Source: Nageia nagi (Eukaryota > Plantae > Pinophyta). Taken from it: 64,000 bases of DNA. The position numbers and the translations under genes were made by a program. The stretch spans positions 43,524,001 to 43,588,000 of the forward strand of contig JBITNC010000001.1 in the NCBI GenBank assembly GCA_050084985.1. The letters run 5' to 3'. This document shows positions 8,334-62,000 of the stretch, piece after piece; position 1 is the first letter of the stretch, and every line of letters begins with the position of its first letter. The notes under the pieces are model-generated. The model was not told the DNA's origin, did not search any database, and was given only the letters and a program-made list of their open reading frames with translations.

Positions 8334-10270
8334 TGTATTCTTTTAGAATTACACTCTTGATACAAGGTGAATTTTTGGTATTCTTTATTCTTTCATTCAT
8401 TTCAATAAATCTTTCCTAATTCCTGCTTCCTTTACCCCTTTCTACATGTATTTAACCTTTTTGTCAAAATTGAGTCAAGTGTAAAGAGTTCTGGGTGTTG
8501 TCAATGTCTGGGTATTGTTTATATATATCTTAGTCTTAAACCTTTTTGTTTCAAGCTCTAACCGCTATCTAGCGAATGTTGTAATAAGTCCCAATGATAA
8601 GCCTTGGTCAGTTTAGCTGTTCCTATGATAACTGTGTATATAAAGAGAGTCATAGGTTGTGAAAATATGGTTTAAGTCATGTTCGAGAACCAATATACTA
8701 TGTCTAGATAATATTGTAATATGTAAGGGAAGTCAATGTCTAAGTAAAAGTTTAGGATTTATTGTAAATAAACATTCGGGTATAGTTTAGATCTTTAGCA
8801 GGTGATGTCATAGAGCCCACTAATTTTCTCAAGGAAGTTTTGATCGAGCACTAAAAATTTGTGAGAAGTATTGCAAGGAGATATAATAGAATCTGTTGAT
8901 TTTGAATGATGATATAATCATTTTTATATAAAATTAGTGGGTCCCAAGATAATCAATAATGGGAACTACTTCATTTAGTGGGAGATACTTCATGAAGACA
9001 CCTAAACAAAGCCCATCGATTTTGAATGGTGATATTACAATTTTTTGCCAAAATTAATGGGTCCTAAGATAACATTCAATGGGAAGTACCACATTCAGTG
9101 GGAGATATTTCATAAAGGCAACTAAATAGAACTCGTTGATTTTGAATGATGATGTCACACCTTTTACCTAAAATCAGCTGGTGTTAAATAAATCTTGACC
9201 ATCACTAGAGCCCATTAAAAAAAGATAGAACCAACAAGATAGAAGGAGAAATAATGGGTACGAAGGAACACCCGAGTCCACTTGATCATGAGTGTTTGAC
9301 ACTCGGGGCTCAATTAATGTGTTGACTATGACTTCTTTCCACATAACAGTAATAGTTCCTCCTAGGTCTTCAATGATACACTATTCATTACCCTCACTAT
9401 TCAATGCAACCAAGAGTTACAATGCTCATCATTTATTGTTGCAGAGAAGTAGGTCATTATTGACATAATACAATGCTTGATCATACCAATCAATCAAAAG
9501 ATAATACATCCTCAATCAACTACAAACTTAGGAGAATGTAGTCAATGACAAACAAGGAGGATTACAACTCAACAAGTACAATGGCTCAAAAATTTTGAAT
9601 TCCCAGACTTCAACATTGATTATACTTGTTCATTGTGTAATGTAACACAATTGTAATCATAATTATATATCTATAAATAGTTCCATTTATAATTTTTAAC
9701 CAATAAGAGTAGTTATGAGTATTAATGATGAACAACCACCCAATTGGGGAGAAAAATGTATAAATAGTGGACTGTTGTAAGTCCCAAAGGTCATACATTC
9801 TAGCAAATTTGTCCAAGTTTGTAAGATGCTTTTGTATATGATAATACAAGTTGATGATGCTTTTCCCTTTGCAATAAGTGGTTGTCTGTTACACTTTGTT
9901 AATGTTATGTATGAGATGATATCTTAATTTATGGCTATGTATTGTGATTGCGAGATCCTAAGGGTAAGATAGTTTCCTATTCTTAATCTTGGCTATGGAT
10001 TGCAACCAGTGCTGCAATGCCCGTGCTATTTAGTTTAGTTATATTTTAGTTTAATATGTTCATCTCTTTCCTATTACTCAGCATTTTATTCCTTTATTAT
10101 TCCTTTCAACCTTTATAATAGATAGGAATCGACCTATAATTTAGAGATTGAGCAGAAAACCAACATGACTGCATCCCCACCATCTTTTGCTCTCTCAAGG
10201 ACCTTACTATTATGGGAAATGGAAAACTCAACCAGGCCAAACCTTTGAGGTTACATTATATCAATCAATA
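8334..10270 (+). repeat. Element A 5' LTR
   Basis: Starts TGtattcttttagaatt and is colinear with 39141-41076 up to ttacattata....at.aata. Contains ~2.4 copies of a 120-bp unit (gattttgaatg at 8898, 9018, 9138). Confidence 0.92.
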
Positions 10271-10287
10271 GTAGAAAAGTCCATTTT

Positions 10288-10969: not shown

Positions 10970-11918
10970 TATAGACACCTAAAAATGAGCCTTGTTTGAA
11001 AGTCAAACAATGCAAATTAAAAAATATAAAAATCTAATTTAACCAAAATGCCAACAATCATGTTAGAATCATCGAAAATTGGATCTAATCGCTAATGCTC
11101 AATCAAGGTCACCAACAAATTTGTAGTAAGAAAACCTAAAAAAAGAAAATGAACTATGAAGCTCATCTTTTCAGTGTAGCCCTGGATAAAGATGAGAGCT
11201 GTCAATCCTGATAAGGATTGATGAGTCCTTATCATAATATTTTGGGTTGCAGATAGGATTAGACTCATTCATTCTCAAGAATGGATGAGATTTGACCCTT
11301 AACTATTAGCAAACCTAAACACTAACTTAGGAGACCAAAACATCTATAAATACAATATACATTATAAACTAACTAGACCTTGACTTGGAAGTAACATTAT
11401 GCTATTGGAATGCTTATTGAATTATGTGTTGTAAGCTTACATTACTTTAGTAAGTTATGCATACTTATATTATTTGTTAATGTTTGATTATTATCAAGTG
11501 TAGGTATGTTTTATGTGTGTGTTTCTTGGCATGTGTGCAGGGTTCGTAGTTGGTGAGGAGTAATAGTGCATTAGAACAATAAAATAAAAGCTCAAGCCAT
11601 TAGATTTGAAGTTATTCACCCAATAAAAAGACATCAAAATACAACATATAGCCCAAGTTGTAGAAACATTGACATTTGTAGATGGATGCTAGTGATTCAT
11701 CTAGATTGCTAGTGATCAATAGAGATCATTGGTGATTCCCTTATTTGTTTAACAAAAAGATAGACACATTACACATTGTACTAAAAGTCCTTTCTTAAGG
11801 TAGTGAATAAGAATCCATCAATTGTGACAAATCTAAGGTCTTTCAAAAAATTAATAGAATTAATATTGGTATAAATATTGTTCATTTGTTTTCATATAGG
11901 TTGGTTTTATGGCTAACA
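10970..11918 (+). repeat. Element B 5' LTR
   Basis: tatagacacctaaaaatgag...ggctaaCA. Colinear with 29197-29968 and followed by the PBS. Confidence 0.9.
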
Positions 11919-29196: not shown

Positions 29197-29968
29197 TGTA
29201 AACACCTAAAAATGACCCTTGTTTGAAATTTGAACAATTTAAATTGTAAAAAATATAAAAAACCTAATTTAACCACAATGCCAATGATTATGTCTAAATC
29301 ATCAATGATTAGATCTAATTACCAACATCAAACAAGGTCGTTAGTGAGTCTATAGAAAGAAAACCTAAAAAAAGAAAATGAATTGTGAATCTCATCTCTT
29401 CCATGTAGCTCTAGATAGAGACGATATTTATCAATCCTAATAAAGATTGATGAGTCCCTTCTTGTACTATTTCAGGTTGTAAATAGGATTAGACTCATCT
29501 ATTCTCAAGAATTTATGATATTTGACCCCTAACTATTAGCAAACCTAGGCACTAACTTAGGAGACCAAAAAATTGATAAATGTAATATATGTGATAAAAT
29601 AACTAGACCCTGACTTGGAAGTAACGTTATGCTGTTCGAATGCTTATTGAATTATGTGTTGTAAGCTTACATTACTTCAAGAAGTTATGTATACTTGTAT
29701 TGTTTATTAATTTTTAATTCTTATCAAGTGTAGGTATGCTTTATGTGTGTGTTTCTTAGCATGTGTGCAGGATCTATAGTTGTTGAGGAGTAATAGTGTA
29801 TTGGAACAATAAAACAAAAGCTCAAGCCACTAGATTTGAAGGTATTCATCTAGTAAAAAGACATCAAAATACAACATATAGCCCAGGTTATAGAAATGCC
29901 AACATTTGCAAATGGGCACCAATGATTTATTCAGATCACTAATGATCAATACAGATCACTAGTGATTC
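29197..29968 (+). repeat. Element B 3' LTR (3'-truncated by ~180 bp)
   Basis: Matches 10970-11738. Similarity stops after gtgattc, and the sequence switches to the late gag of A. Confidence 0.88.
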
Positions 29969-39060: not shown

Positions 39061-39140
39061 CATCTAGATAAGTAGTTGGAACCAACCAATAAAGGGTTCT
39101 ATTCTCTAACAAGCAAAGACCCTAAGAGCTACCAGAAGAT

Positions 39141-41076
39141 TGTATTCTTTTAGAATTTCACTCTAGATACAAGGTGATTTTTTGGTATTCTTTATTCTTT
39201 CATTCATTTCAATAAATATTTCCTAATTCTTGCTTACTTTTCCCCTTTCTAGATGTATTTAGCCTTTTTATCAAAATTGAGTCAAGTCTAAAGAGTTTTA
39301 GGTCTTATCAATGTCTAGGTATTATTTATATATATCTTAGTCTTAAACCTTTTTATTTCAAGATCTAGCTGCTATCTAGTAGATGTTGTAATAAGTCTCA
39401 AGAATAAGCCTTGGTTAGTTTAGTTGTTCCTCTGGTAATTATGTATATAAAGAGAGTCATAGGTTGTGAAAATCTAGTCTAAGTCATGTCTAGGAATCAA
39501 TATATTATCTGGGTAATATTATAATATGTAAGGGAAGTCAATGTCTAAGTAAAAGTCTTGGAGTTATTATAAATAAACATCTATGTATAGTCTAGATATC
39601 TAGCAAGTGATGTCACAGAGCCCACTAATTTTCTCAAGGAAGTCTTGATCGAACACTAAAAATTTATGGGAAGTATTGCAAAGAGATAGAATAGAACTTG
39701 CTGATTTTAAATGATGACATCATCATTTTATATAAAATAAATAGGTCTCAATATAATCAATAATAGGCACTACTTCATTTAGTAGGATATACTTCATGAA
39801 GACACCTAAATAAAGCTCATTGATTTTGAATGATGACATTACAACTTTTTGCCAAAATTAGCTGGTCTTAAGATAACATTCAATAGGAAGTACCACATTC
39901 AATAGGGCATTTTTCATAAAGAAACTAAATAGAACCTATTAATTTTGAATGATGATGTCACACCTTTTGCCTAAAATCAGTTAGTGTTAAAATAAATCCT
40001 AACCATCACTAGAGCTTATCAAAGAAAGATAGAACCTGCTAAATAGAAGGAGAAATAATGGGTATGAAGGAACATGAAGTTCACTTGATCATGAGTGTTT
40101 GACCCTTGGGACTCTATTAATGTGTAAAATATGACTCATTTCCACATAATAGTAGCAATTCCTCCTAGGTATTCAATGATACACTATTCATTACCCTCAC
40201 TATTCCATGCAACCAAGAGTTACAATGCTCATCATTTATCATTGTAAAGAAGTAGGTCACTACCAAAAGAATACAATGATTGATCACACCAATCAACTAA
40301 TATATAGTGCATCATTAATTAGCTATAGATGTAGGAGAATGCAGTTAATAAAAGATAAGGAGGATTATGGCTCAACAAGTACAATGGCTCAAAAATTTCA
40401 AATTTCCAAACTTTAACATTGATTGTACTTGTTCATTATGTAATCTAACATAAGTTGTAATCATAATTGTATATATGTAAATAGTTCCATTTACTATTTT
40501 TAGGTAGGAAGAGTATTTATGAGTATCAATGATGAAAAACCATCCAATTGGAGAGAAAAATGTATAAATAGTGGAATATTATAAGTCCCAAAGGTTAGAT
40601 ATTCTAGCAAATTTTCCCAAGTCGGTAAGATGCTTTTGTATATGGTAATACAAGTTGATGATGATTTACCCTTTGCAACAAGTGTCTATCTATTAAGCTT
40701 TGTTAATGTTATGTATGAGATGCTATCTTAAGTTGTGGTTATGTATTATGATTGTGAGACCCTAAGGGTAAGATAGTTTCCTATTCTTAATCTTAGCTAT
40801 GGATTGTAACCTATGCTATAATGCCCAAACTATTTAGTTTAGTTCCCTTTTAGTTTAATATGTTCATCTCTTTCCTATTAATATTAGCCTTTTATTCCTT
40901 TCTTGTTACTTTCAACCTTTATAATAGATAGGAACCATCATACAATTTGAAGATTGAGCATAAAACCAACACGAGTGCATATCCACCATCTTTTGCTCTC
41001 TCAAGGACCTTACTATTATGGGCAATAGAGAACTTGACCAGACCAAACCCTTGAGATTACATTATACTGATAAATA
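39141..41076 (+). repeat. Element A 3' LTR
   Basis: TGtattcttttagaatt...ttacattatactgataaata. Roughly 85-90% identical to 8334-10270 by manual sampling. No clean PPT upstream. Confidence 0.92.
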
Positions 41077-41920
41077 GGGCCCAAGTTGTTGGAGATCAAC
41101 TATTCCAAGTTCATTCGTATAAAACCCAAATAGAGTGTATAAGAGGAGATAGCCTATTTTATATCAATAATGCAATATACATTAACATATATGTGAGAAC
41201 CAACTTGGAATTGGCCCATTAATTATTCATAAAATGTCATGACAAAGGATATAACATCTCTAGGGATCCTTAGGTTCTTTAGTCTCTAGAATAGGATATG
41301 TCTAGGGAAAATATCAAAGGCCTTATGAAAGATAATAAAGCAATGGTAAACCTTCTATTTGTTATCTTGATCTTATCAATGGTGGCCCATAAAGTGAGGA
41401 TGTGACCAACAATGTAATAGTTTTTATGAAATCCAACTTGATTAGATGCATGAAGATTATGCACTTCAACAAATCTAGATATGAACTCATCAAGAGTTGT
41501 AGGAAAGGATTTTTCTATGGTGTGGTCAACCATAATTATTTTGTAGTTACTAGGGTTGAGGGGGTAAAAAACCTTGTAAATGAGATGGATGACATGGGAG
41601 GTTCAATGGGAGGAAACCCATGTTAAGAGATGCAGTTGAACATTCCAACAATATAGATAGCCAAAATTGCAAGACTATGTTTGAGGAATTCAACACTTAG
41701 ATTTTCAAGGTCAAGGTATTTCGTACTCTATAGTTTGCAAATAGCTTATAAAATCATTTTATCAATGAAGAAATGAATAGGATGAGGTTGAGGGTTGGGA
41801 ATGATAGAGAGCCGATTCAAGATGCTATAGAGGATAGATGCATAAGTGAACTAGATATGCGGGTTAGTAATAGAGCACATATGAGACTTAAGGTGAAAGA
41901 GGGACCACGAGAAATTAACA
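41077..41920 (-). mobile_element. Degenerate RTE/RTE-X-like LINE, 5' half of RT ORF
   Basis: Minus strand: AICKL..K..DLENLSVEFLK..MFN...GFPP..NPSNYKIIMVDH...QVGFHKNY.IVGHILTL..ID...AFD...K*GY.L..TLFGFY.NEL. These are RT motifs 0-4 and continue in the piece at 8333. Confidence 0.87.
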
Positions 41921-43720: not shown

Positions 43721-46700
43721 CTAACTTCATTGGGAATGTGAAAACATCAAGTGAACCATTCATATAATTTTATCAACATGAGGAGAGATATAAAAAATAT
43801 AAAGCATAAGGATCCTCAATTGCACATGATAGAAAAAATAGATGGAAAAATGTTCAATAGAGTATTATTAGATGAGGTACTAGTAATCCATGTGGTGTCA
43901 TCAACAATCTTGAGCAAGTTAAATCTCCCTCTTTCTCTCTTGGAAGCTCCAACTTTAGTCTTGAGATCCTTCAACAATCAACTATGAAACACTTTTGGAA
44001 GCATATTTCTACCTATTGAGGCTGATTTAAGACCAAAAATTCTTCATTTCAAGTGATATAGGAAGAAACATAAAATTAAGTTTTACTCAAAAGACCATGG
44101 ATAAGGGAAATGGAATGTGTTCCATAAACACTACAGGGGTGTGTCAAATATCTTAGGGATGGGTAATGCATTGTATATGGATGGATGTGGAACCTTTTAG
44201 CCATTACAACCTTGTTGATTTGTCTCATGGAACTCTCCTTCCTTCCACCTATATCTATATGGAAATTATACATATAAATAATGACCCATTGCTTCTTTCT
44301 TGGTATGAACTCACATAATGAATTGGAAGTATATAGAGTATCTCAAAATTCACAAGACAATAATACATAACAAAAAACAAAAAGAAAATTAGTATTAAAT
44401 AAATCATATAATGAAATAGAGTAATCTTTAATTAATTTATGGGAACAAGAGTCTCAAATAGTTGTCTATAAAGAAACTAATAAAGAAGAGTTTCGTGGTC
44501 TTTCCCCTATATTACAAGAGAAAACTTCTTGGAAGGAAAGAGCTTAATATCTAGAAAATAATTGAAAAATCTTCCTTTAAAAATGATATTCCAAATAGTT
44601 CCTCTATATTGAACCAAGTACAATAACTAAATAAGAGGAACATGATAAACAATATGATAACTTAGAAATTATTAATAAAAAATAAAATAAGTACAATCTA
44701 ATGTATAAGAACTTGTGTCTATAATTGATTTTGAGTTCAAAAACATAAGCATGGGTGAATATTCTATTTATGATATAATGTTTATTGTACTTTCATTTCA
44801 TGATGTTGGGTGTACAATTGAATACCCTTTGGCCATTAGCATACTCATCCCACTTGGAACCATTAAGAATCAAACTTATCTTGTGTATGCGGGACTAGAT
44901 GCTCTAACTTATTTATCTTATAAATCGGCTCCCAAAAAGAGTTTTTATGGAAAAATTGATTATATTTCCTATTCCTATTTTATTCATAAATAGTTTTACA
45001 AGTATAATTGGTAGGGCTATGTCTTGGTTAGATATGAGCAAGGCATTGTTCATGTCATGCAATTGCCTTTAATATAAAGGTTCTCAAAATTCAAATGCTA
45101 TAGCCCAACTGCATGAGTTATAAGATGAGGGAGACTATGAGGAATCCCTATCCCTCATGGAGGTGCACTATTTGATGCACCTTCTTCACCTATTCCTAAA
45201 TTTTCTCTTTCTTCATTCTTGTTTGAACAAGTAAACATGATTAGTATCTCATTTGTCTCTTGTTTCTCTCACATGTTTGATTTTGGTGATTCTCATTTGT
45301 AGATCAAGATGTTGTTGACTTTTCTATGATGTCTCTTCATGATATTTATACACATGATTCCTTTGTTTATCCTTGTGACCATGTTGAACCCTATATAGAT
45401 GACCTAGATGAGGATGAAAATAGGCCTTTTTTGAACCATAAGTTGGAGGATGGGTCCCATATGTTAGTAGAGGAAGCTATAGATGTTAACTTGAGTGATG
45501 ATCCAAACAATCCAAAAATGGTCAAAAGTAGAAAGTATTACATAGGATGAGAGAAAAGAGTTTTCTATTTGGTTAAAGGAAATGATAAAGATCTTTTCTT
45601 ACCCTTATCAGGATACTCCTGGATTAGATATAAATTTAGTGATGCACCATTTGACTCTTAAAGAGGATGCTAAACCAATAAAGCAAAAACCTAGAAAAAT
45701 GCATCCAACTAAGGCTTTAATGGTTAAATCCAAATTACATAAAATTCCATATGTAAAATTAATTAAAGATATAACTTATCCACAATGGGTTTCCAACAAT
45801 GTGATAGTTCTAAAGCCTATGGTAGGATTCAAATTTGCATATATTTTAAAGATGTAACTAAGGCTTTCCTTAAGGATGATTTTCCTCTTCCTAATATTGA
45901 TACCTTAGTGGATAACATAAGACTTGACAATGCAGGTTCTACATATTATCATGCAATGAGTTACATACTTCATGATTACATGCACAACATAGTAGAAGAC
46001 TACATGGATGATCTTATTATCAAATCTAAAATACATGAGTATCATTTAGATATATTATGCAAAATATTAGATAGAGTCTTGGAATACAATGTTAGACTTA
46101 ATCCCAATAAATGTGTGTTTGAGATTTTATTAGGAAAGTTACTAGGTTTAATTGTTTCAAAAAGACGTATTGATATATACCCAAATAATTTCAAAGAAAT
46201 TAATGAAATGCCTCCACCTAAAAACCTCAAAAAAATTTATACAAAAAAAATCCAAGCTACTAGAAGGTTCATTGCATAATTGTCAAATAAATGTCATCCT
46301 TTCAATAACTTATTAAAGAAGAATGCAAAGTTTATATGGGATCAATAATATCAAGATTCTTTTGAGTATATTAAGAGATGTCTTACACATCCTCCTATCA
46401 TTTATACCACCTAGACTAGGGGTTCTATTTCATCTTTACATCTTTGCCACAAAATTTTCTTTGGGCTTCATGTTAGTACAATAAAATGATGTAAAAAAGG
46501 AACAAGCTATTTAATACTTGAGCTAAAATTTATCCATCTATGAGAATATGTATTCCCACTTAGTGGTTTTTTCAACACAAAAACTAAGGCACTATATGTT
46601 AAATCATAAGATCTTTATGATTTCAAAGATGATCCTCTTAAGTACATGATGAAAAAAATGGTCCCTAATGCAAGAGTAGCCAAGTGGATCATGTTCCTCA

Positions 46701-46743
46701 TAGAATTTGACCTAGAGTTAAATAAATCAAAAGTCTATAAAAG
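43721..46743 (+). mobile_element. Element C (Ogre-like), part 1: PROT, RT, RNase H; 5' end lost
   Basis: FNRVLLDEVLVIHV..LKRPWI (PROT); PIKQKPRKMHP, DDFPLPNIDTLVDN, YMDDLI, LNPNKCVF (RT); KLRHY..AKWIMFLIEFDL..QKSIK (RH). Colinear with B. Confidence 0.9.
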
Positions 46744-47946
46744 TGCAATGTTTTCAATTTATCATTGTACCTTTATCATACCATTATACTTCACCATAGT
46801 TATTGGATTGTTGATTCATCTTCTGGATTAGATAGAGCATCTTGTGCCTAATATTTTGACATGTTATACAACATGGTTTCATCAAGAAATGAAAGAGATA
46901 TTGCCTTTTGAATTTCACTTATTGAGCTAATTTTCTACATTCACATGTGTGGGAATTTACTATTTCTCCCATTTAATGGGATTTCTCTATGTAACATCCC
47001 TCTTATAGGGATATGATATAGCATTTGATTATTTATAGAAGTTTCCTATATAATTAGGATTCTTTATGCACCCTTTGATAATAATGAGTTATAATAATGA
47101 ATTAGTGAGACCTTGGGATAGGAGATTTATGGGTCCAAGGGACCAATTGTGAGCCCTAATGTGGGAAGTATCCCTCCTAGAAATAATTAGGAGCATTTAT
47201 TAGCATTTTACATGATTATGGTGACTACAAGGAGTGATTATATAGATCTCAAGATTAATATATGCTCCTAGGGATGTGAGATGTCAAAGCTTGATGACTC
47301 ATAGATGAAGATCTAGGCATCCAAAGTAAGGCATCATCTATTTATTAGGCTAGCACAACATTAAGGAGGCATATTTTGGAATATTTAATAAACTTCTATT
47401 TTGGATTATGGTGTAGTGTCATCTCTTGGGCCTATTGTGGATGAAAACTTATAAGGGAAGGGTTTGATGGAATGAAAACCCCACTAGATCTTGATTGAGG
47501 ATGAAAAACCCACTAGATCTTGATTGAGCACAAAAACTCTTAGTCATTAGTTACATCATTTCTACCTTTGGGGATCTAGGAGTTGGGAAGATCCCTTTGG
47601 TGGAGCATCCAACCTCCAAGGGAGTATTACTTCAATTATTCTTTGCAGATCCAATGATTTAGAGCCTAACATTATGACATCAACCTTATTAGTACATATT
47701 TTTCATTGTTTGGTCCTAGATCTAGTCCATAAAGCTAGATGTAAGTCCTTTTGGGTTGTATTTCCTTTTATCTTGATACTTCATTTCTATATATTAAGGC
47801 ATTGCACCATTAGATTTCATATTTGGTTGTGTATTGGATATTTTTGGTAATATTACTATGTTTGGTATTATTTCATAATTATTGCATGGTTTCGTTGCAC
47901 ATTTTGGTTAATAATTTAGAATATATATTATTTCATGTGAACATCA
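46744..47946 (+). repeat. Element D 5' LTR
   Basis: TGcaatgttttcaatttatcatt...gtgaacatCA. Colinear with 57871-59037. Has a private ~29-bp tandem duplication (47472-47528). Confidence 0.9.
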
Positions 47947-49709
47947 AAGTGTATCATATCTAATATCTTAATAGCTTGTGGAGATTAATAGAGAAGAATC
48001 ATTTAAATCTAGGGAAAGAATTGAAAAATTGGATGCCCTAATACATATGGTGAAGGAGTTGCTTGATGGCATGAGAAGAAGAGATTATTTTTCTAGGGAA
48101 TCATTTACTCAACATGGATATATGCCATATACAAGGATGAGAGATTGAAAAAAAATGTACGAAGCTATGCCAAGTCTAGAGAAAAGGATTCTACCACACT
48201 TTTATAGAATAATATCTATGAGACAATAATATTTAGGAGGAAGCAATCCCTTTTTATATATATTAGGTTTGCAAGAGATCTAGGAGAAGGAGGTAGTTTG
48301 GTTAGCCATTTATCACCATTTCCTATAACATCCAAGCCCATGTTCCTTCCCAAGAAAGAGGATTATCCAAATATTTGAATCCATGGGATTTATATGCCCT
48401 ATTTTGGGAGTACCAAGAGAATTTGGAAGAATTCATGGTTACAATTTTTTTTTAGAATTATTTGGAGCTTTTAGGAAGAAAGTGAGGTCGTGGAGGATTG
48501 AAGAGCTTCTATATGAGAGATTTAGGATTTGGATAAGGATGCAAACCCTCTAAGGCATCATGTGCACCATTATGAGAATTGGATTCACCATGAGGGCACC
48601 TAAAAGGGTATGAAAGCAATTCTTATTTTATGACAATAGTGCATTTATAAATATGATGGGAGAAGAGATCTACAACAAGAATTTAGATCTAATCAAATAA
48701 AACCAACCATACATTGGGAAAATGAAACACACATATAGATGAAAATGGTAGAGATAAGATTGAGAAGAATCTAGTGAATCACAAATGGATCTTAAGGTAA
48801 ATATTATTGGCCCTAAATTGGAAGAATTTCATAAGAAGCTTATGGAAGAAGAGAACAACATTAAAGAAAAAACCCTAAGTTTGAAGAATGGTACAAAGAA
48901 GATAATGAGATCATGGATAACAAGTGTATGGAATCCTATTTATTTCTTAACAATGGTTCTTCAATACATGATTATAATAGTCTTGACAAAAGTAATGGGG
49001 ACTACGTCCATGAAGAAAGACATATTTAATATATGGTAAAAGATGTAGAAGTGGGATACAAGGAGGTCATCACATCATAATCAAAGAAGGATACATGGCA
49101 TGAAGTTTGGGAGAATGTTAGAGGGTTCCTCTTTGTGAATTTAGCCTTCAAGGAAAGGCATCCATATTTAGGGGGATTTGGTAAAGTGTAACACATCAAA
49201 AGAACTTAATTATAGCTTAAGGAATTGATGTGCAACCTCTAGGATTGCATTTGTATCATTAGAGGCTTGGAATGGCTATAGAGGGGTTGTTGAGAGTTAT
49301 GAAACAATTATTGATTTTATTTTGAATTATGACAACAATTAAATAGTAATGAAGACCTAGATCTAATTAGAAGAGTAATGGAAGAATGGATATTGAGTTG
49401 GTTGGTTGTTAATAAGAAGATATAGGTTGTTCTACCAAAATACTTATTGAGACTACATACTAGACAAAAAAGGGATTTTGGGGGCAATTTTAAATTGTTT
49501 TCTATCATATTTACTAGTGATTATCTGCCCATTTCCTATGAGCTTGCCACCAAAAGTCCCCTCTTTATGATGATGGTTAAACATTGTTAGTATATGGGAC
49601 TTGAAACCACCTTTTAATGTCGTACAAAGTTGGTTATAAACCACCTCATTATGTTTTTAAAGTGATAGTTTGAGCCATCGCTTTATGGATATATGCAATG
49701 GTTTTTTTA

Positions 49710-50168
49710 CCATCACATACCCTAGAAGCATTATTCCAAATGGAAGAATGCTTCCAAGATACTCCATCCTCAGTTACCCGAGGAATTCGGGCTCAATCAT
49801 GGTGAGCCCAATTATGATGTTGGCCATGGAATCTCAAAGGATGGCCTAATAGAAATGAACAATCATCATATATATATATATATATATACAATAGTTAAAA
49901 TCCATCACATAGCAATAGAAGAATGCTTCCAAGCTATGCCATCCTTAATTACTTGAGGCATTTGAGCTCAATCATAATGAGCCCAATTATGATGCTGGCC
50001 ATGGATTACCAAAGGATGTCCTAATGGAACTGACTAATCACCATATATATATTTTATATATAAATGGTGATTGGTCAGTTCCATTAGCACATCCTTCATG
50101 AATTATGATGCTAGCCATGGATTCCCTAAGGATGGCCTAATGAAACTGACCAATCATTGTATATATAT
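49710..50168. repeat. Module X tandem copies, (TA)10 tract and fold-back
   Basis: gaagaatgcttccaag...gagcccaattatgatg(t/c)tggccatgga...aaggatg.cctaat.gaa.tga..aatca..atatat occurs twice, plus a third partial copy. (TA)10 at 49869-49888. Inverted arm at 50064-50096. Confidence 0.9.
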
Positions 50169-53100
50169 GTGAATGATGAAGTGGTAAGTTGGAAAAAATA
50201 TGCTTGTAATACTTTGCAATTGTTCAACCTAGAAATTTAAATGCTATGTTATCTTACTTCCATAATAATATATCTTTCCCCTAGGATAACCTATTCAAAA
50301 AATCATGAATGAGAAGCTATTAATAGATGTATCATTGTTATATAACCATACAACCAACTTGGATGCTTAAAACATATGATATGAAATGATATAAGTCCAC
50401 CATATGATAGAAAATTATGTGCTTTTAAGCAGATGCATGATGCAAACACAATTTCATTATCTACAATGATTGCAAGATACAAACACATGATGCAAGGCTT
50501 GGGAATTATTTGACAAGATGCATGATGTAAACATAATTTTTTGAAAAAGCTCAATAAGATTCAAATATTCTCTACAATTATGCTTAAATGATCAATAATG
50601 CCATAATTATGATCAAATATTATTACTCATATGATTCAAATATGCTCTATAGTACTGCTACCATAACATCTTGATTTATAAGCATCAAGTAGACACATCC
50701 ACACACCCAAATAACACTTTTTGAAATAAATGAAATGGAACATAAAACTTGATAGACATGAATGTAAAATGCGGATGATGTAGATATAGTCTCATGGACT
50801 ACAATGGTTGGAGGAAATGCAATTCATGGCTACAACAAGGATTCCCTTAAACTCTGATACTATGAACCACTTGGGAACCACATATTTTTTTGTGTTTAGC
50901 TATGTATTACAAGCACATTTTTGCCAACTTAGGTGGGAACATAGATTAGTTTTCATAATTTCAAGTTTTTGAATCATATGGTGTATTTAAATAATTTTAT
51001 ATCACAAGTTGAACAATTGCTTTCCTTATCCAAGCTATTTTTTTGATCATATGGTGTATTTAAATCATTTATATCACAACATATAGTGAAAAAAAATAAA
51101 TAAATAAAAAGATGCACATCAGAAGCTTAGGAGGGCACTTGGAATGTTTTTATCATTTCAAGTTTTTATAAGATGAAGGGGTTGAAGAGGGAGAGGGGAA
51201 TTTGATGTATTTAAATAATTTCATATCACATCATATGGTGTATTTAAATAATTCCATACAATATGTCATAATTTATTTGTAAAAATAATTTTAATACAGG
51301 TGATGTTATGAAGTAGCTCACAACATATTCCATTATTTTCATCTAACACATCCACATACCCAATTTAGGGTTTATGGGTATTTTGGCACTTAGGGGTAAT
51401 TGGTTCTTTGAATTTTTTTACATTCTTTCACAAAGCCTATGAATCATGAAATTATTGTAGACTATAAAATTGCATTTACATCATGCATCTTATGGTTGTG
51501 ATTGCCCTAATAGATATGTATGAAAAATATGAAATAGTGTAGAAGGCATAAGAATTATTTCATGTCTCTATGGGCCTTTAATTTTTAGAATACCCATTTT
51601 ATGTGTATCGATTAATAATTATAGAAGGTGAAGTTCAAATCTCCCTCAAGATAGTTTGCACAACCAAGAAGGTCAATAATGAATGTATAATGATTAATCT
51701 TGCAATTGTATGGTATGCATAAAATGAAAGGTTGTAGATACTTTTAAGTAGATGCAATTGTCAAGTGTAAAACTAGCTTGGTGAAGGACAACAACAAACT
51801 ACCTAAGTTCTCAAACATAATATTATGGAATGCAATGATTGGAGGATATGCAATTCATAGCTAAAACAAAGATGCCCTTAAAATATTTAATATGATGACT
51901 GATTATTATCATATTACACCCATAATGAAATATTATACGTTAAGAAAGGGTAAAAACTAGTACAAAAGTGGTAAATTGGAAAAAACATGCTTGTAATACT
52001 TAGCAACTATTCAACCTAGAAATTTAAATGCTATGTTGCTTAACTCCACAATAAGCACAACAAGAAATTTAAATGCTATGTTTCTTATATAAATACAATA
52101 TATGATATAAAATGAACCAAGTGCACTATATATAATATTTAAAACTTTCCCAAGATAGCCTACATGGCCAAGAAGGTCAATAATGCATGTATAATGACTC
52201 ATTAGTCACTTGAAAAGTTATCAAGTATTTCAAGCTATGAAAAATGACATATTTGGTGCTATCTTTGCACTTGGAAATTTTAAACAACAATGACACAATT
52301 ATAAGCATTGACATGATTATAGGAATTAACTAGTGAAAAATCACTATGATAAGTATGATACTAGTATAAACAAAATTATTAATCAATGCTATCTATTAAC
52401 ATTTCTATCTACATTATCATATATGATATGCTATGTTGCTTACCTCCATAATAAGCACAATAAGATATAAAGGTTGTATGTGTTTCCTCTTGGATAACTT
52501 GTACAAAATATCATGAATTAGAAAAGTCAAGGATAGCTACATTTACAAGTTCTCAAAAGATATATCACCATTATACTTCAACATTATTCATAATGTTACG
52601 ATACAACAAACCTGGATGCTTAAAACTATAGAGATTATAATATGATGAGTCAATTGTAACTGTATCATATGACATGAAATGATTTTTCCCTATATACATA
52701 TGCATAGATGACACAAATACTTTATGCCATATCTACTCTGGTCTCACCACATCTCCTCATGTCTAGTCTTTCTTCATCTATGTGGTCTAACCAATACACC
52801 AAATGCCCCTCTTTCCTCCAATAATGATCATATGATATGCACAAACATGATATGAAACTATGTCAAGTGCACCATATGTATGATATTAAATGATCTAAGT
52901 ACATCATAAGTTATGAAATTATGTAAAGTGCACTATATGTATGGTATGAAATAATGTAAATGCACCTCTCTTCTCCAACCCTTCAGTGTGAAACTATGTC
53001 TGCATCATGTCTATCTATATAAAAAAATTTATATAAATAAATTATGGCATATGATATGAAATTGTGTTTGCATCATATATATTCTACATTACAGTCCATG

Positions 53101-53399
53101 AAACTATGTTTGCATCATGTATCTTCCACATTTTGCATACATATCTATTAAGTTTTATGTTCGATTTCAATTTTTCAAAAAGGGATTCTTAGGTGTGTGG
53201 ATGTGTCTACTTGGTTCTTCTAAATAGAATGTTGTGGTAGTAGTACTATATATCATATTTGATTCATTTGAGAAATAATTGGAACAATAAAGCATATTTG
53301 AATAATTTCATATCATATGGTACAATAGCATCTTTTCAAACTAATAAGGTGTAATTAGATAATTTCATATCATATGTTGGTGCATTTGGATCATCAAGT

Positions 53400-54880
53400 G
53401 TATATATATAATGATGACTAGTTATTTCCATTGGAATATCCTTCAAGATCCCATGGAAAAAATCATAATTGGGATGGTTGAGCTTAGGTGCCAAAATACC
53501 CCTAAACCTTGAATTTGGTATGTCCATGTGTCTACTTTATGCTTTGTAAATTGAATGTTATGGTTTTGAATGCCTAGAAAGACATGTATGCAAAGTGTGG
53601 AATAATACTCAAAGCCCATAGACATGTATGTAAAATGGAAGCTCTAGAAGAAGGTATATTTATCTATCAAAGAGTAGTTGAAAATGGTTTTTCCTTGAAT
53701 ATTATGGTTCTTACTACTTTGATAGACATGTATGAAATAATACAAAAGGCCCAAGAATTATTTTTCAAGATGCATGATGTAATATGAAATGATTGAAATA
53801 TAGTAACATATGATCCAAAAGATGGCTTGGGTAAGGTAAGAAAATTTTCAAAACAAAAATTTTCTAAGTATAAAAAACTAATCCAAAAGTGGTAAGTTGG
53901 AAAAAAATATAAAGCCTAGGAATTGTTTAAAAATATGCATGATGCAAGCACATTTTCATAGAATGCAATTGTTAGGTGTGAATCCAGACTCTAAAATCTT
54001 TGCAAGTAATATTTCCAGTACACATTCTAAATATATCAAAGACCTAAATGTAATATATATATTCAAATTATGAATTTATGAAGATTATCAAAATAACTAA
54101 TATTCATAATTTGAATCAATATCTTTAAATAAGGTCTTACATGATATATTTTGTTCTTTGTGAGAACTCTTTTTGTTTCTCATTATTTGAATGAGAAACA
54201 AAACAAGGCTCTTAGCAAAACACAAAATATATCCTAGAAAGACAAAAACTTTTATAAAATGAGAAACCTTTGTATTTGTTCTACTTGCATATATAAACAT
54301 GTGTATGTGTTCTAATATATATATAATGGTGACTTATCAGTTCCATTGGGCCATATTTTGGAGCCCATGGCCAACATCATAATTGGGCTCACTAGGATTG
54401 AGCTCATGTGCCAAAATACCCATAAACCCTTAATTGGGTATGTGGATGTGTCTACATGATGCTTTATAAATAGAATATTATGATTTTGAATGCTTGGATA
54501 GACATGTATGCAAAGTGTGGAACAATACTGAAAGCCCATAGACATGTATACAAAATGGGAGCTTTAGAAGAAAGAATGGACTTCCATCAAAGAGTAGTTA
54601 AAAATGTTTTTGCCTTGAATATTATGGTTCTGAATGCCTTGATAGAAATATATGCAAAATATGAAATAATACACAAGGATTGAGAATTATTTCACAAGAT
54701 GCATGATGTGATATGAAATGATTTAAATATAGTATGATATGATCTAAAAATTGGCTTGGAGAAAGAAAGCAACTATTCAACCTAGACATTTTCCAAGTAT
54801 CAAAAACCAATCCAAAAGTGATAAGTTGGTAAAAAACATAATTCCTAGGAATTGTTTGATAAGACACATGATGCAAGTAT
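53400..54880. repeat. Direct duplication of a ~550-bp composite block (period ~915 bp)
   Basis: 53400-53950 and 54315-54880 have the same order: inverted module X, E1 fragment, S/L/S PPR pieces, module Y piece, ELF..MHDA. Confidence 0.88.
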
Positions 54881-55612
54881 AGTGTCAATATCTTTCAAGA
54901 AGGTATTGCAGGTTATATTCTATACTTTACCAAGAACCCTTTGTTTTATGAAAAATAAAAAGGGCTCTTAGGAAAGAATAAAACTAGCATGAGAAACCTT
55001 TATATGTGTTCTACTTGCATATATGTTTATGTGTTCTACTTGCATGCAACCATGTAGGTGTAATGGATGAGGGTTGTAAATAAATTAATAACATGAGTGA
55101 CTTTTATTTCATTATTCATGGGATGTATCATTCTTACAACATGTGCCACCATGGGAGCTCTAGAAGAAGATATGGACATCCATCAAAGAGTAGTTGAAAA
55201 TGGATTTCCATCAAATGTTGTGGTTGTGAATGTACTAATAGCCATGTATGCAAAATATGGAAGAATACACAAGGCTTGTTAATTGTTTAACAAGATGCAT
55301 GATGCATACACAATTTCATTAGGGAGAGACATCCAACCTTTATATCTTATTATGCTTATTGTGGAGGTAAGATAACATAGCATTTAAATTTCTAGGTTGA
55401 ATAATTGTTAAGTATTACACGCTTGTTTTTTACATATTACCACTTTTGTATTGGTTTTTGACACTTTCTTAAAGTATAGTATTTCATCATGTAGCCATTT
55501 TTACACATAATAATTGAATCCACTTAAAAGTCTCTACAAGTATTTCATTTTTGTGCATATCCTTCAATTGTAGGATTAATCATTGTATATGCATTGTTGA
55601 TCTTATTTTCCA

Positions 55613-56045
55613 TGTAGGCTATCTTGAGGGAGATTTGAACTTCATTGCTAAAATACCCATAAACCATGAATTGGGTGTGTGTATATGTCTTCTTGGTGCT
55701 TGTAAATCAAATGTTGTGGTTTGTGTAGGCTATCTTGAGGGACATTTGAAATTCATTGCAAAATACCCATAAACCTTGCATTAGATGTGTGCATGTGTCT
55801 ACTTGGTACTTTAAAATTGAATGCTATGGTTCAAGAAGGTTATATTGAGGAAGGTTTTAAATTCATTGCAAAAATACCCATAAACCTTGAATTGGGTGTG
55901 TAGATGTGTCTACTTGGTGCTCATAAATTGAATCAAGTGGTTTGTGTAGGTTATGGGAGCTTTGAAATTCACTACCAAAATACCCATAAACCATGAATTG
56001 GGTGTGTGCATGCATCAACTTGGTGCTTGTAAATCAAATGTTGTA
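55613..56045 (+). repeat. Four tandem ~111-bp units of the PPR S2/E1 junction
   Basis: Unit tgtaggctatcttgaggga.atttgaa.ttcattgc.aaaatacccataaacc.tgaattgggtgtgtg.atgtgtctacttggtgct..taaat..aatg..gtggtt, starting ~55613, 55724, 55835, 55945. Confidence 0.92.
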
Positions 56046-56049
56046 AGTT

Positions 56050-56395
56050 TATTTGACAAGATGCATAACATAAATAAAGTTTCATATTCTATAATGATTG
56101 CATGATACAAAAAATGGGTTTTTTGAAAAAGGCTTGTAGACACATGAAATATGTGTAAGAATAAAACAAGATCCAATATTTATTTGACACAATACATGAT
56201 AAAAACATAGTTTCATAGTGTATAGTGATTACATGATACATAAAATGGGTTTTCAAAAAAAACCCATAGACACATGAAACATGTGGAAGAATACACAAGA
56301 CCCAAGGTAAGTTTGATAAAATGCATGATGTAAAAATAGTTTCATGGTATACAATGTTTACAAGATTCATGGGTTTTATAAAATAATGTAGACAA
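56050..56395 (+). repeat. About three tandem ~130-bp units of a PPR S/P junction
   Basis: tttga.a.aat.cat.a..taaa.a.agtttcat...tata.tgatt.catgataca.aaaatgggtttt...tagacacatgaaa.atgtg.aagaata..caaga starting ~56050, 56180, 56310. Confidence 0.85.
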
Positions 56396-57870
56396 ATATA
56401 AAGCATATTCATATATGCAAAATGTAGAAGAAATATAAAATAATACTGCAAGTCTATAAGATCATAGACCGAAATACCTACTTGCACCTCCTAGATAACA
56501 TGTTTCCCATCAACTAGTCTCACCAAGTCTCCTCTCATCTAGTATCACCACATATCCTCTTGTCTGGTCTCACCACATATCCTCTCATATATCTCCCCTC
56601 TCTTCTCTCATCATGCCAATACACCAAAGGCCCCTCTCCTTCCAATCCCTCTTCTCAAAAAATCTTGAAATGTCAAAAACATTAAGTGCCTACCAATAAA
56701 TTCCCTCTTATGTCCTTTTTTTAATTTCATTTAAAGGCTATTTTTTGCTACCTTATTTGTTTATTTTTGTGTGAGGAAATGTTTCCATATAGAAATCATT
56801 GCTAAAATAAATAATTGGGGTGATTAAAAATTGATACAACAAAACTACCTTAAATTTCCCACCTCCAAGCCCATTTTTGATCTAGTGACTTATGATGAAA
56901 AGTATGAGTATTTTTTGTTTATTGTGATTAAAATAGTTATGTTGATGCTTAAAATCCTAGTTTTGATTAATATTTTCTTTAACATTGAGTCATCACATTC
57001 CAAGAGGATTGAGGGGATACTCACCATGGAGATTGGGATGAATATCTTAGGGTCTATTCTTAACATGCCATTAAAGGATGTGTAGACTACATTATTTATA
57101 TATTTTGGGACTATTATTTCCATACATAGGATTGATTTAATTAGGGAGTTTTGGATTCTTATTGATGACTTGAGGCTGCTATCAGAAGATCAAGGATTGT
57201 TGTATTTGGCATAAATAAAGGGTTTGTTGTCTACATGATAGGGACTGTATTTTGTATTAGTTTTAGGGATGCATATGATGATATATGGAGTGTTACTGGA
57301 GTATGTTTTGATGATTTTTTGAGGACTATTTTTCACTTATTATGGGTTGCATTTGATAAAGTCTTGACTATTATTGGTATATTATTGGAGACCTCTTGGA
57401 TGGCATTCCTTATACCATTTGGAGTCTTCTTTGAAGACTTAATGTTGGTAACCTCTTTATCAATTATGAGGGTTGTTATCATGTGTTTGTATGATGTATG
57501 GGAAACCTTGAGTATTTATTCTAATCCATTTCACCTTGATTTTTATTTCAAACCCAAGTATCACACATTTGTTGAATTTTGGAAAGGAGAAAAGGTTATT
57601 GTCTAAGTTTTGGACTAATTTTGCATAAGAGTTGAGTGGATCTTGATGTGGTTTTATTAGATACTCTAGGGATTGTATCTCTACATGTTGATATTACCTT
57701 TACTACTTTATTCATTCTTACCAAGAAGAATATAATAGCATAAAAACAACATAATAGACCCACTCTTTTAAATTTTATTTGGGACCTTGGGATTGCAGTT
57801 GGGTTTAGCTTGGTGATGATGAGATGTGATGGTATTGTTTGAAGGAAAGAAATTTTGAGAGGGGTGGTAC

Positions 57871-59037
57871 TGTAATATTACCAATTTATCATTATTTATT
57901 TGTATTAACATTATTCTTTACCATAGGTCCTAGATTGTTGATTCATGTTATGGGTTGGATAAAGCATCTTGTGCTAAACATTTTGACAGGTTACACAACA
58001 TGTTTTCATTAGGAAATGAATGAGATATTACCTTTTGAAGTTTACTTGTGAGCTAGTATTCTATAATTGTACACATGATAATTTACTATTTTATTCCATT
58101 TAATGGGATTTTATTTGTGACATCCCTCTCATAGGGATATGAGATAGTAGCTGATTATAACTAGGAGTTATCTATGTAATTTGGAGTCTTTATGTACCCT
58201 TTAATGATAATGACTTGTAATAATGATTTAGTGAGACCTCGAGATAGGAGATTGATGGGTACAAGGGACCAATTGTGAGCCCTAATGTGGGATGTATCCC
58301 TCTTAGAGATATTTAGGAGTGTTTATTAGCATTATACATAAGTATGGTGACTACAAGGAGTGATTATGTGGATATCAAGGTTAATCTATGCTCCTATGGA
58401 TGTGATACGTCCAAGCTTGATGACTCCTAGTGAAGATCTAAGCATCCAAAGTAAGGTTTCATGTATATATTAGGATACTATAGCATTAAGAAGGCATATT
58501 TTAGCATATTTTATATATTCTATTTCAAAGTGTGATGTAGAGTCATCTCTTGGGCATATTATGGATGAAAACCTACAAGGGAAGGGTTTGATGGGATGAA
58601 AACCCCACTAGATCTTGAATGAGGATGAAAACCCTTAGTCATTGGTTGCATTAGTTATACCTTTAGGGACCCAAAAGTTGGGAAGATATCTTTAGTGGAG
58701 GTTCTAGCCTTTGAGGGAGTGGCTTGAGTTATTCATTACAGATCCAATGATTTAGATCCTAGCATTGTTACATCAACCTTCATGGTACATATTTGTCATT
58801 ATTTGGTGCTAGATTTAATTCCTAAATCCATACATAAACCCTTTTGGGATCTATTGCCTTGTATCTTTATCATTCATTGCTATATATTGATGTGTTGTTT
58901 CAATCAATCTCACAATTACTTGTGCATTACATATTTTTGACCATATTTTTGTGTTTGGTATTATTTCATGATCATTGCATGGTTTGTTGCATATTTTAAC
59001 TAATAGTTTGGAATAGAAAATAGTTTTGAACATCCAA
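57871..59037 (+). repeat. Element D 3' LTR
   Basis: TGtaatattaccaatttatcatt...tgaacatccaa. Roughly 80% identical to the 5' LTR in the first ~200 bp by manual count. Confidence 0.9.
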
Positions 59038-62000
59038 AAAAGGTTAAGTAGTTGTAGATTAGTTGGTTGAGGCTCATAAAAGGATGGTATTGCCCTTAAC
59101 ATTGAGTTACCTAATAGTAACCTTTTTGGCATATTTGAGATTGAGGAAGATGTAGAGAAAGAAGACTATGATATAACTTTCTATTTTGATAGCTCACAAT
59201 GTAAATAAGGGGGAGGAGGGGGAATAAGTTTTATCACTCCTTAAGGTATGCCTATCCCATTTCTTTCAAATTGTTTTTGAGTGTACAAATAACAATGTTA
59301 TATATGATGCACTTATCCTTGGTAAAAAAATTGCAATTGAGATGAAACTAGAAAGAGTAATGATTTATGAAGATTCCTTCCTTATTGTAAATTAGATTAA
59401 GGTTATATATCAATGTAACCAACCGCTCTTGCAAAAATATAAGGCAATTATGAAGAAACTATTGAAATACTTTAAGGAATATGAGATTGAATCTACTTCT
59501 AGATCTTCTAACTAATTTGCAGATACTATGGCTTTATTGGGATCTTTAATACCTCAAAATCCATTCAGAAAGGTCACACATGTATAGGTTGTAATATTAC
59601 ATAAGTATTACTTAATATCATGTATACCTTATGATGAGATAAAAATACAAGTAAATTAATCACATGTAGAACCTAAATACTTATGGTACCAACAATATAA
59701 ATATTATCTTAAGTGGTGACCTTACCATTCACTATGTCTACTGGTGAGAAAAGATAGTTTAAATAAAAGGAAATCAAATACACAATGCTAGGAGATGTGG
59801 TATATAGGTGTGAGTATAATGGGGTGCTTCTTAGATGTATTGAGTGGCTTGACCAATAAATTTACATGCATACATGTCATGATGGAACTTGGGAAGGATA
59901 TTTTAGTGGTATTTCTATTTCCAAGTGCTTGATTAGAATGAATTATTATTGACTCACCATGGAAAGAGATTGTCATGACTATGTCATGAAATATGTAAAA
60001 TGCCAACAACATGCTAACTTGAGACATTTAACTTCTCAAGTGCTACAACTATTCAATTTATGTGGCCTTTTTCATAGTGGGGCTTTGATTTAATTGGTTA
60101 GTTTAATCCTACCTCATTAGGAGATCATAAGTTTATTATTACAACCATCAAATATTTAACAAAATGGGTTGAATAAGTACCACTTATATTACTAAAGGAA
60201 CTAAAATTGTAGAGTTTATTGACTATAATATCATATAGAGGTTCAAATACCTGTAAGGATCATTTCAAATAATGTAAAGAATTTTAAAAATCAAGACATG
60301 CAACACTTATGTTATAGATACAAAAAAAGAATAGCTTTTCCACTCCATATTATCTGTAGGGTAATAGGTAAGCTGAGGCCACTAATAAAACTCTTATTTC
60401 TATTCTAAAGAAAATAGTCATAATTTGTCATAGGAATTGGCACACATAGATATTACTATCATTATGGGCTTATAGGACTAGTATTATAACTCCTACAAGG
60501 TAAACACCTTTCTCACTTATCTATGGGCTTGAACTAATTATGCCTCTTGAGCTAGAGAAGCCTTCATTGAGGATATATTTATAAGATTTATTACTAGACC
60601 TGAAGCTAGATAAGTTAGGTTGGATCAATTGGTTTTTCTATATGAGAAGCAAGTCAATACCTTAGAACATTTTAAAGTCTATCAAGACTGCATTAAAAGA
60701 GCATATTAAAAAAGATCAAAGCTAGAGAGTTTTAGATTTATGATATAGTAATTAAAGAAAATCAACAAAATTATCACCAAGAGCTAGTGTTAAGGGATAC
60801 TTTTGCTTTGAATTAGTTGGGTCTCTATATGATAAAATGTAAATTTAGGTCAAGGGCATATCATTTGGCTACTTTGGAGGGTGTGGAGGAGGCATAATCT
60901 ATTAATATTATGCACCTCTATCCTTTTCACATCAAGGGGGACTTGGTCACTTGATTTTTATATTTATTTGTGGTCACTCATGCATCATTAAATACTAAAA
61001 AGCTAAAAACCTAAAAACATAATGGTCTTAATCATCAAACAACTTCTATCAATGTCTTGTATCATCTCATATATTTTCATAATTCCATCATATTGTGGCT
61101 TGTCATGTGATTTTGCTTTTTGTTTGTTTTACATATGCTTATTTGGAAAGGATTACTATTTTGTCTATATTAAATAGTTTCTAGAGTTACTTTTTGCATC
61201 ACTTGTTCAAGCTCATCAAGCTTTGATCAAGGTATTTTGGAGATAATACTTTGATAGTTTCTTTCTTTTAGTGTTTCCTACTTTTTTTGGGAATACAAGG
61301 ACCATAATCACTTGATTCTTTGTATCACTTTCTCTACTTATCAACACTTATTATTTTTATGTACATATTTTATTTTGTATTTTCTTTGCATATGTATGGT
61401 CTTGGAACCATTATACGTCATCTCTTTCCTAGTATGGTTAGAGCTAGGGCATGTATTACACATTAAGTTAGATATCAGTTATAAACCTCTTTGCTATGCT
61501 CATTAAATTTGCTCATTGTATATAATTATTACTAATATTTCATTGTCTTATTTTGTATCACTTGGATTGGGTCCATTGAATGGAACTTTATTTCTATTAT
61601 TGTGAAAAGGTTTTGAATAAGAGTACATTCAACATATTAAAATGGAATTCAGCCCCAAAAATCCTACATCATAACATCATGTTTATATGCATAGATTGGT
61701 CAATTATAATTCTTCTATGAGTTTAATTTATGGCTTCATCTTGAGCATGAGATTTTTTTGCTTATTGATTCCTAAGTATATAACTTTATGTGGTGTTTTA
61801 ACATGGTCACTTTGATGTTGTCTAGTTTTATACTTTACATTTCTTATGTTTCTTTATATTGCTTTAGTTATATTACCTTTTAGGTCAATTGATTTTAAGG
61901 TGTGAGTATGTTTGATTAGTTTTCATATTTGGCATTTTGTATTTTTCATCTTCTATAATTTGGTTTATTCTTTATCTTTTTTTAAAATGTTTAAACACAA

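Follow-up and report, generated by a model that had tools for sequence, protein, structure and literature searches.

The question raised by this locus is whether a mosaic of gene fragments, enclosed by the long terminal repeats (LTRs) of a retroelement, is cargo of that retroelement or a mobile element of its own. The locus is part of a 64,000-nucleotide stretch from the conifer Nageia nagi (contig JBITNC010000001.1, positions 43,524,001 to 43,588,000; referred to as the window, with positions counted from its first base). The LTR element, termed D, is inserted into another element, C, and the fragments come from pentatricopeptide repeat (PPR) genes of the PLS class. A first-pass annotation made from the sequence alone had proposed that the PPR fragments move with the LTRs of D. 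This was not borne out, as the mosaic has CACTA-type termini of its own and is found in six copies without D. We consider it likely, with a probability of about 0.8, that three transposons are nested here: the gypsy-like C was hit by D, and D was hit by a CACTA-type element, E, which contains the mosaic. That E is a discrete, Pack-CACTA-like transposon nested in D follows from its own termini, from copies which lack D sequence, and from its excess depth in genome-skim contigs. Most of the interior of E goes back to a PLS-class PPR gene of the E type, namely to its 3′ half with the motifs L, S, P2, L2, S2, and E1.

The assignment to PLS-class PPR genes, already made in the first pass, was confirmed. 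A piece of 61 aa (55097-55279) matches 4018 PLS-class PPR proteins with an E-value ≤0.001 in a search of 1.84 billion representatives. All five top matches that were scanned (P0001, P0002, P0005-P0007) are PPR proteins, with E, E+, and DYW domains in P0006, and all four that were looked up by name are RefSeq proteins of Cryptomeria japonica. PPR motifs were mapped by tblastn with the 150 best proteins and by motif hidden Markov models (HMMs) built from those proteins. Pieces of P, L, S, P2, L2, S2, and E1 motifs are confined to 50494-56368, and reversed-sequence controls score below every reported match. With these methods, neither an E2 nor a DYW signal was found in the mosaic and no PPR signal was found elsewhere in the window. 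Pfam gave only sub-threshold PPR matches on single stop-free pieces, which are too short, so that phmmer, tblastn, and custom motif HMMs were required.

The extent of the PPR sequence is smaller than the 6.5 kb initially assigned to it. Evidence at the protein level covers about 3.0 kb, which increases to about 4.3 kb of 6.7 kb once it is spread by internal DNA similarity. Pieces had been described for both orientations, and minus-strand pieces do exist, but they are few (51615-51743, 52041-52202, and 53087-53199) and most of the mosaic is on the plus strand. Unlike a PLS gene, E has no ordered open P-L-S array with a C-terminal E/DYW region. Its PPR pieces, some two dozen in number, are out of order, occur on both strands, and are broken by stops. 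In the best-preserved piece, L2 is found directly ahead of L-S, which is not the canonical order. At 53539-53781, and again at 54465-54704, an S motif continues directly into the second half of an L motif; this S joined to half L plus S, followed by a P remnant, is found in each copy of a repeat whose period is about 920 bp. S2-E1 is found in a 110-bp tandem array of four copies (55650-56086). The non-PPR tandem module of E contains palindromic stretches centred on (TA)n, at 50012-50096 (85 bp, 89%) and 50056-50168 (116 bp, 76%).

Independent copies of E were found in public metagenome contigs. A scan with an alignment of the S|L junction piece and its database relative P0157 resulted in 24 plant-like contigs, and a BLASTN comparison of 46000-60000 to these gave long collinear matches only within 49444-56893. 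In L002, 3573 bp are collinear with 53369-56887 at about 80% identity, and collinear matches at about this level extend over 2594 bp in L015, 2124 bp in L016, and 1125 bp in L001 (51875-52986). A full-length, more distant relative is present in L017 (3914-12048). In total, there are six independent E-bearing loci (L001/L002, L003/L004, L006/L007, L015, L016, and L017). Homology stops at 56887-56893 in four of them (L002, L015, L016, and L017), and L006/L007 has the same 3′ end as judged by pattern match. Beyond the terminal TAGTG, the five aligned sequences (the window and these four loci) differ completely, and the flanks of the four loci, 0.45-2.8 kb in length, are unrelated to D. On the other side, no relationship is seen between the window and L017 in the sequence that precedes the 5′ end of E. 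Neither LTR nor inner sequence of D was detected in the E-bearing contigs, which have no BLASTN match to 46500-49250 or 57000-60000. In the first pass it had been stated that cargo which never occurs with D-type LTRs would contradict the proposal, and this is what we find at all six loci. The idea of a mobile family that amplifies shuffled PPR pieces holds insofar as copies occur at unrelated loci, but D is not the vehicle.

The copies also have internal arrangements in common. The order L2-then-L-S is found in the window, L002, L015, and L016, and P0157, with 76% aa identity, also has the junction between S and half L. Copies which have diverged by about 20% agree in these non-canonical junctions.

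The termini of E were recognised only by comparison with other copies. A plain search for CACTA/TAGTG words and short inverted repeats at 49700 and 56400 gave nothing convincing, because the 5′ end has been mutated to TACTA and the true ends are located elsewhere, at 49458 and 56887. The left end reads TACTAGACAAAAAAGGG and the family consensus starts with CACTAGACC. The right end reads ...CCCATTTTTGATCTAGTG, and the homology stop in other copies reads ...TTTTTGGTCTAGTG. The end pair of the family is CACTAGACC...GGTCTAGTG, with the consensus CACTAG at the start and CTAGTG at the finish. The 3′ end CTAGTG was found in six cases (window, L002, L015, L016, L017, and L006/L007), and the 5′ ends are CACTAT in L012 (CACTATACC), CAATAG in L017 (CAATAGACCAAAAAGGG), and TACTAG in the window. 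Over about 40 bp, the two ends are imperfect inverted complements, with an alignment score of 13 compared to -5.6±4.4 for random pairs. Only 0.05% of random pairs attain this score, and the two ends are the sole such inverted pair in the window. In L017, the same two ends are 8.1 kb apart. E has terminal inverted repeats (TIRs) of the CACTA type, for which a start with CACT(A/G) is typical, and it has an interior of host gene fragments without a transposase (Pfam), as is characteristic of Pack-type elements. E is CACTA-like, with two reservations, namely an unclean 3-bp target duplication and the lack of subterminal arrays. At position 4443 of L012, a 5′ end (CACTATACCAAAAAAG) is followed within 230 bp by PPR L-S-P motifs that have no DNA similarity to the 5′ region of E; this may represent a further subfamily which carries PPR sequence and has these ends.

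A contrast between E and D is also seen in genome-skim contigs from four organisms, which were placed on 46400-52399 at a likeness of at least 80%. Depth was summed over contigs; this is not a copy number and is used solely to contrast E with D. Over the inner part of D (48000-49399) the summed depth is 0.4-107. It is 69-392 in the bin 49400-49599 and attains 4000-30000 over 50000-52199 in X1 and X2, with lower values and the same pattern in X3 and X5. E-like sequence is 10-1000 times deeper than the inner part of D in the skim contigs of all four organisms, and the depth of the PPR-derived module is 10-100 times that of the adjacent gypsy reverse transcriptase (RT) region. The depth jump between the bins 49200-49399 and 49400-49599 coincides with the left end of E. 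According to skim joints and loose ends, most other copies join the E modules in canonical gene order; an example is the joint of 50527 to 51825, which gives ...KMH..VSWNAMI.

For D, several features that had been described upon first inspection could be verified. Its direct repeats are 80.6% identical over 1166 aligned positions (MAFFT), which corresponds to a Kimura two-parameter distance (K2P) of 0.227. Both start with TG and end with CA, the LTR end being ambiguous by 1 nt. The pentamer AAAAG is found exactly on both flanks and is considered the target-site duplication (TSD) of D, which is weak evidence alone due to the A-rich surroundings. A clear polypurine tract (PPT), gagaggggtgg, is located ahead of the 3′ LTR at 57857-57867. 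A primer binding site (PBS) for Met-tRNA had also been reported. A PBS-like site, tgtatcatatct, does exist 3 nt past the 5′ LTR, but it is degenerate, with about 8-9 of 12 bases like the Met-tRNA PBS, TGGTATCAGAGC. Among 19 interior stop-free pieces, including most of the longest, Pfam gave no match to gag, pol, RT, or transposase. This agrees with the reported lack of an RT, and D is therefore considered non-autonomous. Without its insert, D has 4.86 kb, with LTRs of 1.2 kb and a non-coding interior of 2.5 kb. A stop-free frame of 145 aa in its right inner part (57169-57603) has a relative on another contig, P0151, which is 87% identical; P0151 and P0157 are each the single match from a length-windowed search for homologous proteins. 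Skim contigs which resemble D are 81-84% alike, and paralogous contigs of the left inner part are about 83-84% alike. D had been located to the RNase H end of C. An RT remnant of C is indeed found just upstream of D (Pfam RVT_1), but the RNase H motif downstream (59228-59392) was read by eye only, and Pfam confirmed neither an RNase H nor an integrase of C downstream of D. In the 5′ LTR of D, the segment 46800-47199 has a summed contig depth 10-50 times that of the rest of the LTR (1000-4500 versus 40-340), and this segment may be common to a much larger repeat family.

The copies of E allow its history to be outlined. The E copies from the window, L002, L015, and L016 are equidistant, with a K2P of 0.19-0.22 over about 2 kb, which is the pattern of a transposition burst. 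The LTRs of D differ by a K2P of 0.227. Compared to the distances between the E copies, this fits an insertion of D that either preceded that of E or was roughly contemporaneous with it. With a rate of 0.59e-9 per site and year, as applied to Cryptomeria (PMC11539532), the distances at face value represent well over 100 million years. This is an overestimate because of methylation-driven decay, as seen from the low CpG content (observed/expected 0.03-0.08). Scrambling is older than the burst, since four copies agree in L2-then-L-S and P0157 contains the S|L junction as well. It also continued after the burst, because the window copy has a specific filler of 243 bp, which consists of snippets copied from elsewhere in E and splits a minus-strand S2-E1 piece; this filler is missing from L006 and from many skim contigs.

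The region 1-1808 of L006, which equals 220-2027 of L007, is the 3′ part of an E-type element, with its 3′ end at 1808. It has the order L-S-P-L-S-P2-L2-S2-E1 in one frame with stops, followed by S2/E1 repeats, the tail, and the 3′ end of E. This chunk in canonical order suggests that an ancestor of the E family took up one stretch, the 3′ half of such a PLS-E gene, in a single capture, and L006/L007 may show the family in its least-scrambled form. An alternative route of capture would be the one reported for Pack-CACTA elements of Arabidopsis, with neighbouring insertions and incomplete excision (PMC6379663). Repeated internal duplication, inversion, and insertion of templated filler would have scrambled the captured stretch, as would be expected if gaps were repaired in an error-prone manner and the template was switched between PPR motifs that resemble each other. 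The scrambled E may then have been spread in trans by autonomous CACTA elements.

Several points weigh against the insertion of E, as a CACTA-type transposon, into D. No "empty" copy of D was seen, and a D lineage that already contained E could have moved as a unit. The 3-bp target duplication is unclean, being ACA/ACT in the window and ATA/AAG in L017, with the copies at least about 10% diverged from their ancestor. The first base of the window copy is T rather than C. Subterminal repeats were not found in the end regions of 800 bp, which have no 11-mer or longer word in common and no recurring shorter word; they may be masked by the decay of E. The public contigs with E are metagenome entries, and part of the E-like depth must stem from PPR genes and from other PPR-bearing repeats. 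Finally, the single-capture history is based on one relative, L006/L007.

The alternatives were weighed against the same data. E may have entered a master copy of D, after which the two were retrotransposed jointly on a few occasions; the mosaic would then owe its movement to both mechanisms. Within error, D and the burst of E are of overlapping age, and D has other copies, namely the contig coding for P0151 and the similar skim contigs. However, we found no positive evidence for joint movement, D is low-copy, and a single nested insertion is the simpler explanation, so that we consider this course of events unlikely. It is quite unlikely that E belongs to another TIR superfamily, or is a composite with coincidental CACTAG ends, rather than to CACTA/EnSpm. 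The two reservations mentioned above would be accounted for, as would the fact that no transposase with E ends was identified. The consensus CACTAG...CTAGTG and the inverted complementarity over about 40 bp in two subfamilies argue for the CACTA type.

The proposal that the mosaic is cargo of D and was spread with its LTRs, after an acquisition in which, for instance, PPR mRNAs were co-packaged and used for template switching, has become very improbable. It agrees with the position of the mosaic, which is wholly between the LTRs, and with the similar age of the 920-bp duplication and the LTRs. Paralogous contigs of LTR, inner part, and mosaic are also all about 82-86% alike. It does not account for inverted termini that belong to the mosaic itself, for six independent copies without D sequence, four of which end at the same base with flanks unrelated to D, or for E-like sequence being far commoner than the inner part of D. 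That a PPR gene or a cluster of pseudogenes resident at this site decayed in place, without a mobile unit, is ruled out by the termini and junctions common to unrelated loci: PPR pseudogene arrays in canonical order do exist in related contigs (L009-L011), but the same scrambled order recurs elsewhere with the same ends, and the window has no other PPR signal.

As a nested Pack-CACTA-like transposon, E can be compared to several known systems. Soybean Tgm-type CACTA elements are one Pack-type example, and LTR retrotransposons with captured host gene pieces are represented by the maize Bs1 type. Pack-CACTA or Pack-TYPE transposons have been described in Arabidopsis (Catoni et al. 2019, PMC6379663). 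E resembles these in its CACTA-type inverted ends, the lack of a transposase, an interior of host gene fragments, and many copies with differing flanks. It differs in that its interior comes from a single gene class (PLS PPR), is heavily scrambled, and has been amplified internally to an element of 7.4 kb. It is also apparently high-copy in a conifer giga-genome, and its mobility and capture mechanism are inferred. In grapevine, a segment of a PPR gene is present in antisense orientation in two CACTA copies of Cactavine-5 (Benjak et al. 2008, PMC2528002), for which the authors raised a possible antisense regulatory role. Both are CACTA elements with PPR coding sequence, but Cactavine-5 is of autonomous type with one fragment, whereas E is a transposase-less family with a bulk mosaic of many PPR fragments.

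A study on Platycladus orientalis from 2026 (PMC13477047) puts the number of captured gene fragments at about 400,000 per gymnosperm genome, with capture by all major superfamilies, and describes an epigenetic conflict between captured fragments and donor genes. In that study, 13.7% of the host elements have two or more fragments, and PPR genes are not mentioned in the main text. E is an instance of the same phenomenon, yet with some two dozen PPR pieces in one element. LTR elements with captured gene pieces have been surveyed in rice and sorghum (PMC3726574). E does not correspond to such capture, in which host fragments are located between LTRs, as it is a separate nested DNA transposon with copies that lack the LTRs of D. 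A search of open-access papers yielded no account of a conifer CACTA family with a PPR mosaic.

The window copy of E is a decayed fossil, with stops and frameshifts throughout and a CpG observed/expected ratio of 0.05, and is most likely without function. Regarding the family, we put forward only as a speculative and rather doubtful possibility that E and other PPR-bearing repeats might form a genome-wide, high-copy sense/antisense reservoir of PLS-PPR sequence. Such a reservoir might yield double-stranded RNA, small RNAs, or methylation directed against genes for RNA-editing factors, and might feed motif shuffling into new PPR genes. E contains internal inverted repeats, for example the S2 pieces at 51629-51778 and 55493-55644, which could give double-stranded RNA. 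It has 322 exact 21-mers in common with PPR arrays in canonical order from 15 related contigs, compared to none for a control stretch, so that the sequence match required for cross-talk exists, at least to pseudogene-like arrays.

Canonical P-L-S arrays are found in L011 (5663-6615 and 8960-13017), L010 (5905-8582), and L009 (73-1556), and L011 also has a tandem S-P-L2-E2-DYW unit. They look like PPR pseudogene arrays from the same or a related conifer. None of the arrays in L009-L011 has an open frame of at least 200 aa, and the 21-mer matches can therefore not be assigned to functional genes.

The anatomy of the PPR mosaic is thus corrected to that of a Pack-CACTA-like DNA transposon rather than LTR cargo. 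The single copy in the window is ordinary in itself, and the moderate interest of the family is based on its apparent abundance, as PPR-derived modules look to be among the most abundant sequences in the neighbourhood. If a genome-wide count confirms this, a single gene family, that of organelle RNA-editing factors, would account for an unusually high proportion of the gene fragments captured in a conifer genome. In this case, the epigenetic conflict between transposon-borne fragments and donor genes, as described in maize (bioRxiv 10.1101/777037) and in gymnosperms (PMC13477047), could be tested on a concrete example.

Table 1 Features of elements C, D, and E in the window.
Feature	Position	Strand	Evidence
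RT remnant, host element C (Ty3/gypsy-like)	45785-46279	+	Pfam RVT_1, E 1.1e-7
D 5′ TSD AAAAG	46739-46743		sequence; same pentamer at 59038-59042
D 5′ LTR (TG...CA)	46744-47946	+	direct-repeat families D1, D5, D10, D14-16; MAFFT
Degenerate PBS-like site tgtatcatatct	47950-47961	+	sequence reading; about 8-9 of 12 bases like Met-tRNA PBS
D inner region, left, non-coding, low-copy	47947-49457	+	no Pfam match; depth 0.4-107 in bins 48000-49399
Element E, non-autonomous, probably CACTA-type, PPR mosaic, 7430 bp	49458-56887	+	collinear copies, shared 3′ end, depth jump
E 5′ TIR, TACTAGACAAAAAAGGG...	49458-49497	+	inverted-complement alignment to 3′ end
E 3′ TIR, ...CCCATTTTTGATCTAGTG	56848-56887	+	same end in L002, L015, L016, L017, L006/L007
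Non-PPR module, three tandem copies (~175 and 116 bp)	49739-50168	+	repeat analysis; no Pfam match
Inverted copies of E non-PPR module	53401-53492, 54313-54412		repeat analysis
PPR P/P2-type fragment	50783-50896	+	tblastn P0006 572-614; motif HMM P 15.1
243-bp filler of PPR snippets	51385-51627		joints 51384-51388 to 51628-51631, all four skim runs
PPR S2 fragment	51615-51743	-	translation; HMM S2 4.8; inverted repeat with 55493-55644
PPR S-end + P2 fragment (WNAMIGGYAIH)	51793-51900	+	tblastn P0007; HMM P 23.1, P2 21.3
PPR S2(-E1) fragment	52041-52202	-	tblastn P0116, P0091; HMM S2 18.9
Repeat with ~920-bp period, copies 53401-53948 and 54316-54877	53401-54877	+	82% identical, K2P 0.203; tblastn, HMM
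L2 fragment, then L-S fragment	55027-55303	+	tblastn P0116, P0002, 57-60% identity; HMM 17.5, 20.2, 24.1
S2-E1 fragment + 110-bp tandem array, 4 copies	55578-56086	+	family D2; tblastn P0006 645-703
S-end/P-start fragments (LFDKMH..VSW), ~131-bp repeats	56025-56368	+	family D11; tblastn P0002, P0106
D inner region, right, ending in PPT	56888-57870	+	no similarity in any E-bearing locus
D 3′ LTR	57871-59037	+	direct repeats; MAFFT alignment
D 3′ TSD AAAAG	59038-59042		sequence reading

Two other pairs of long direct repeats are present in the window. One pair (8331-10271 and 39138-41077) is 83-89% identical with the copies 30.8 kb apart, and the other (11227-11526 and 29457-29756) is 87% identical with the copies 18.2 kb apart. 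These are probably LTRs of large nested elements which occupy the first two thirds of the window. Between 5% and 12% of the sampled words of the stretch are found in two air metagenomes (X4 and X15), which fits wind-borne conifer pollen as their source.

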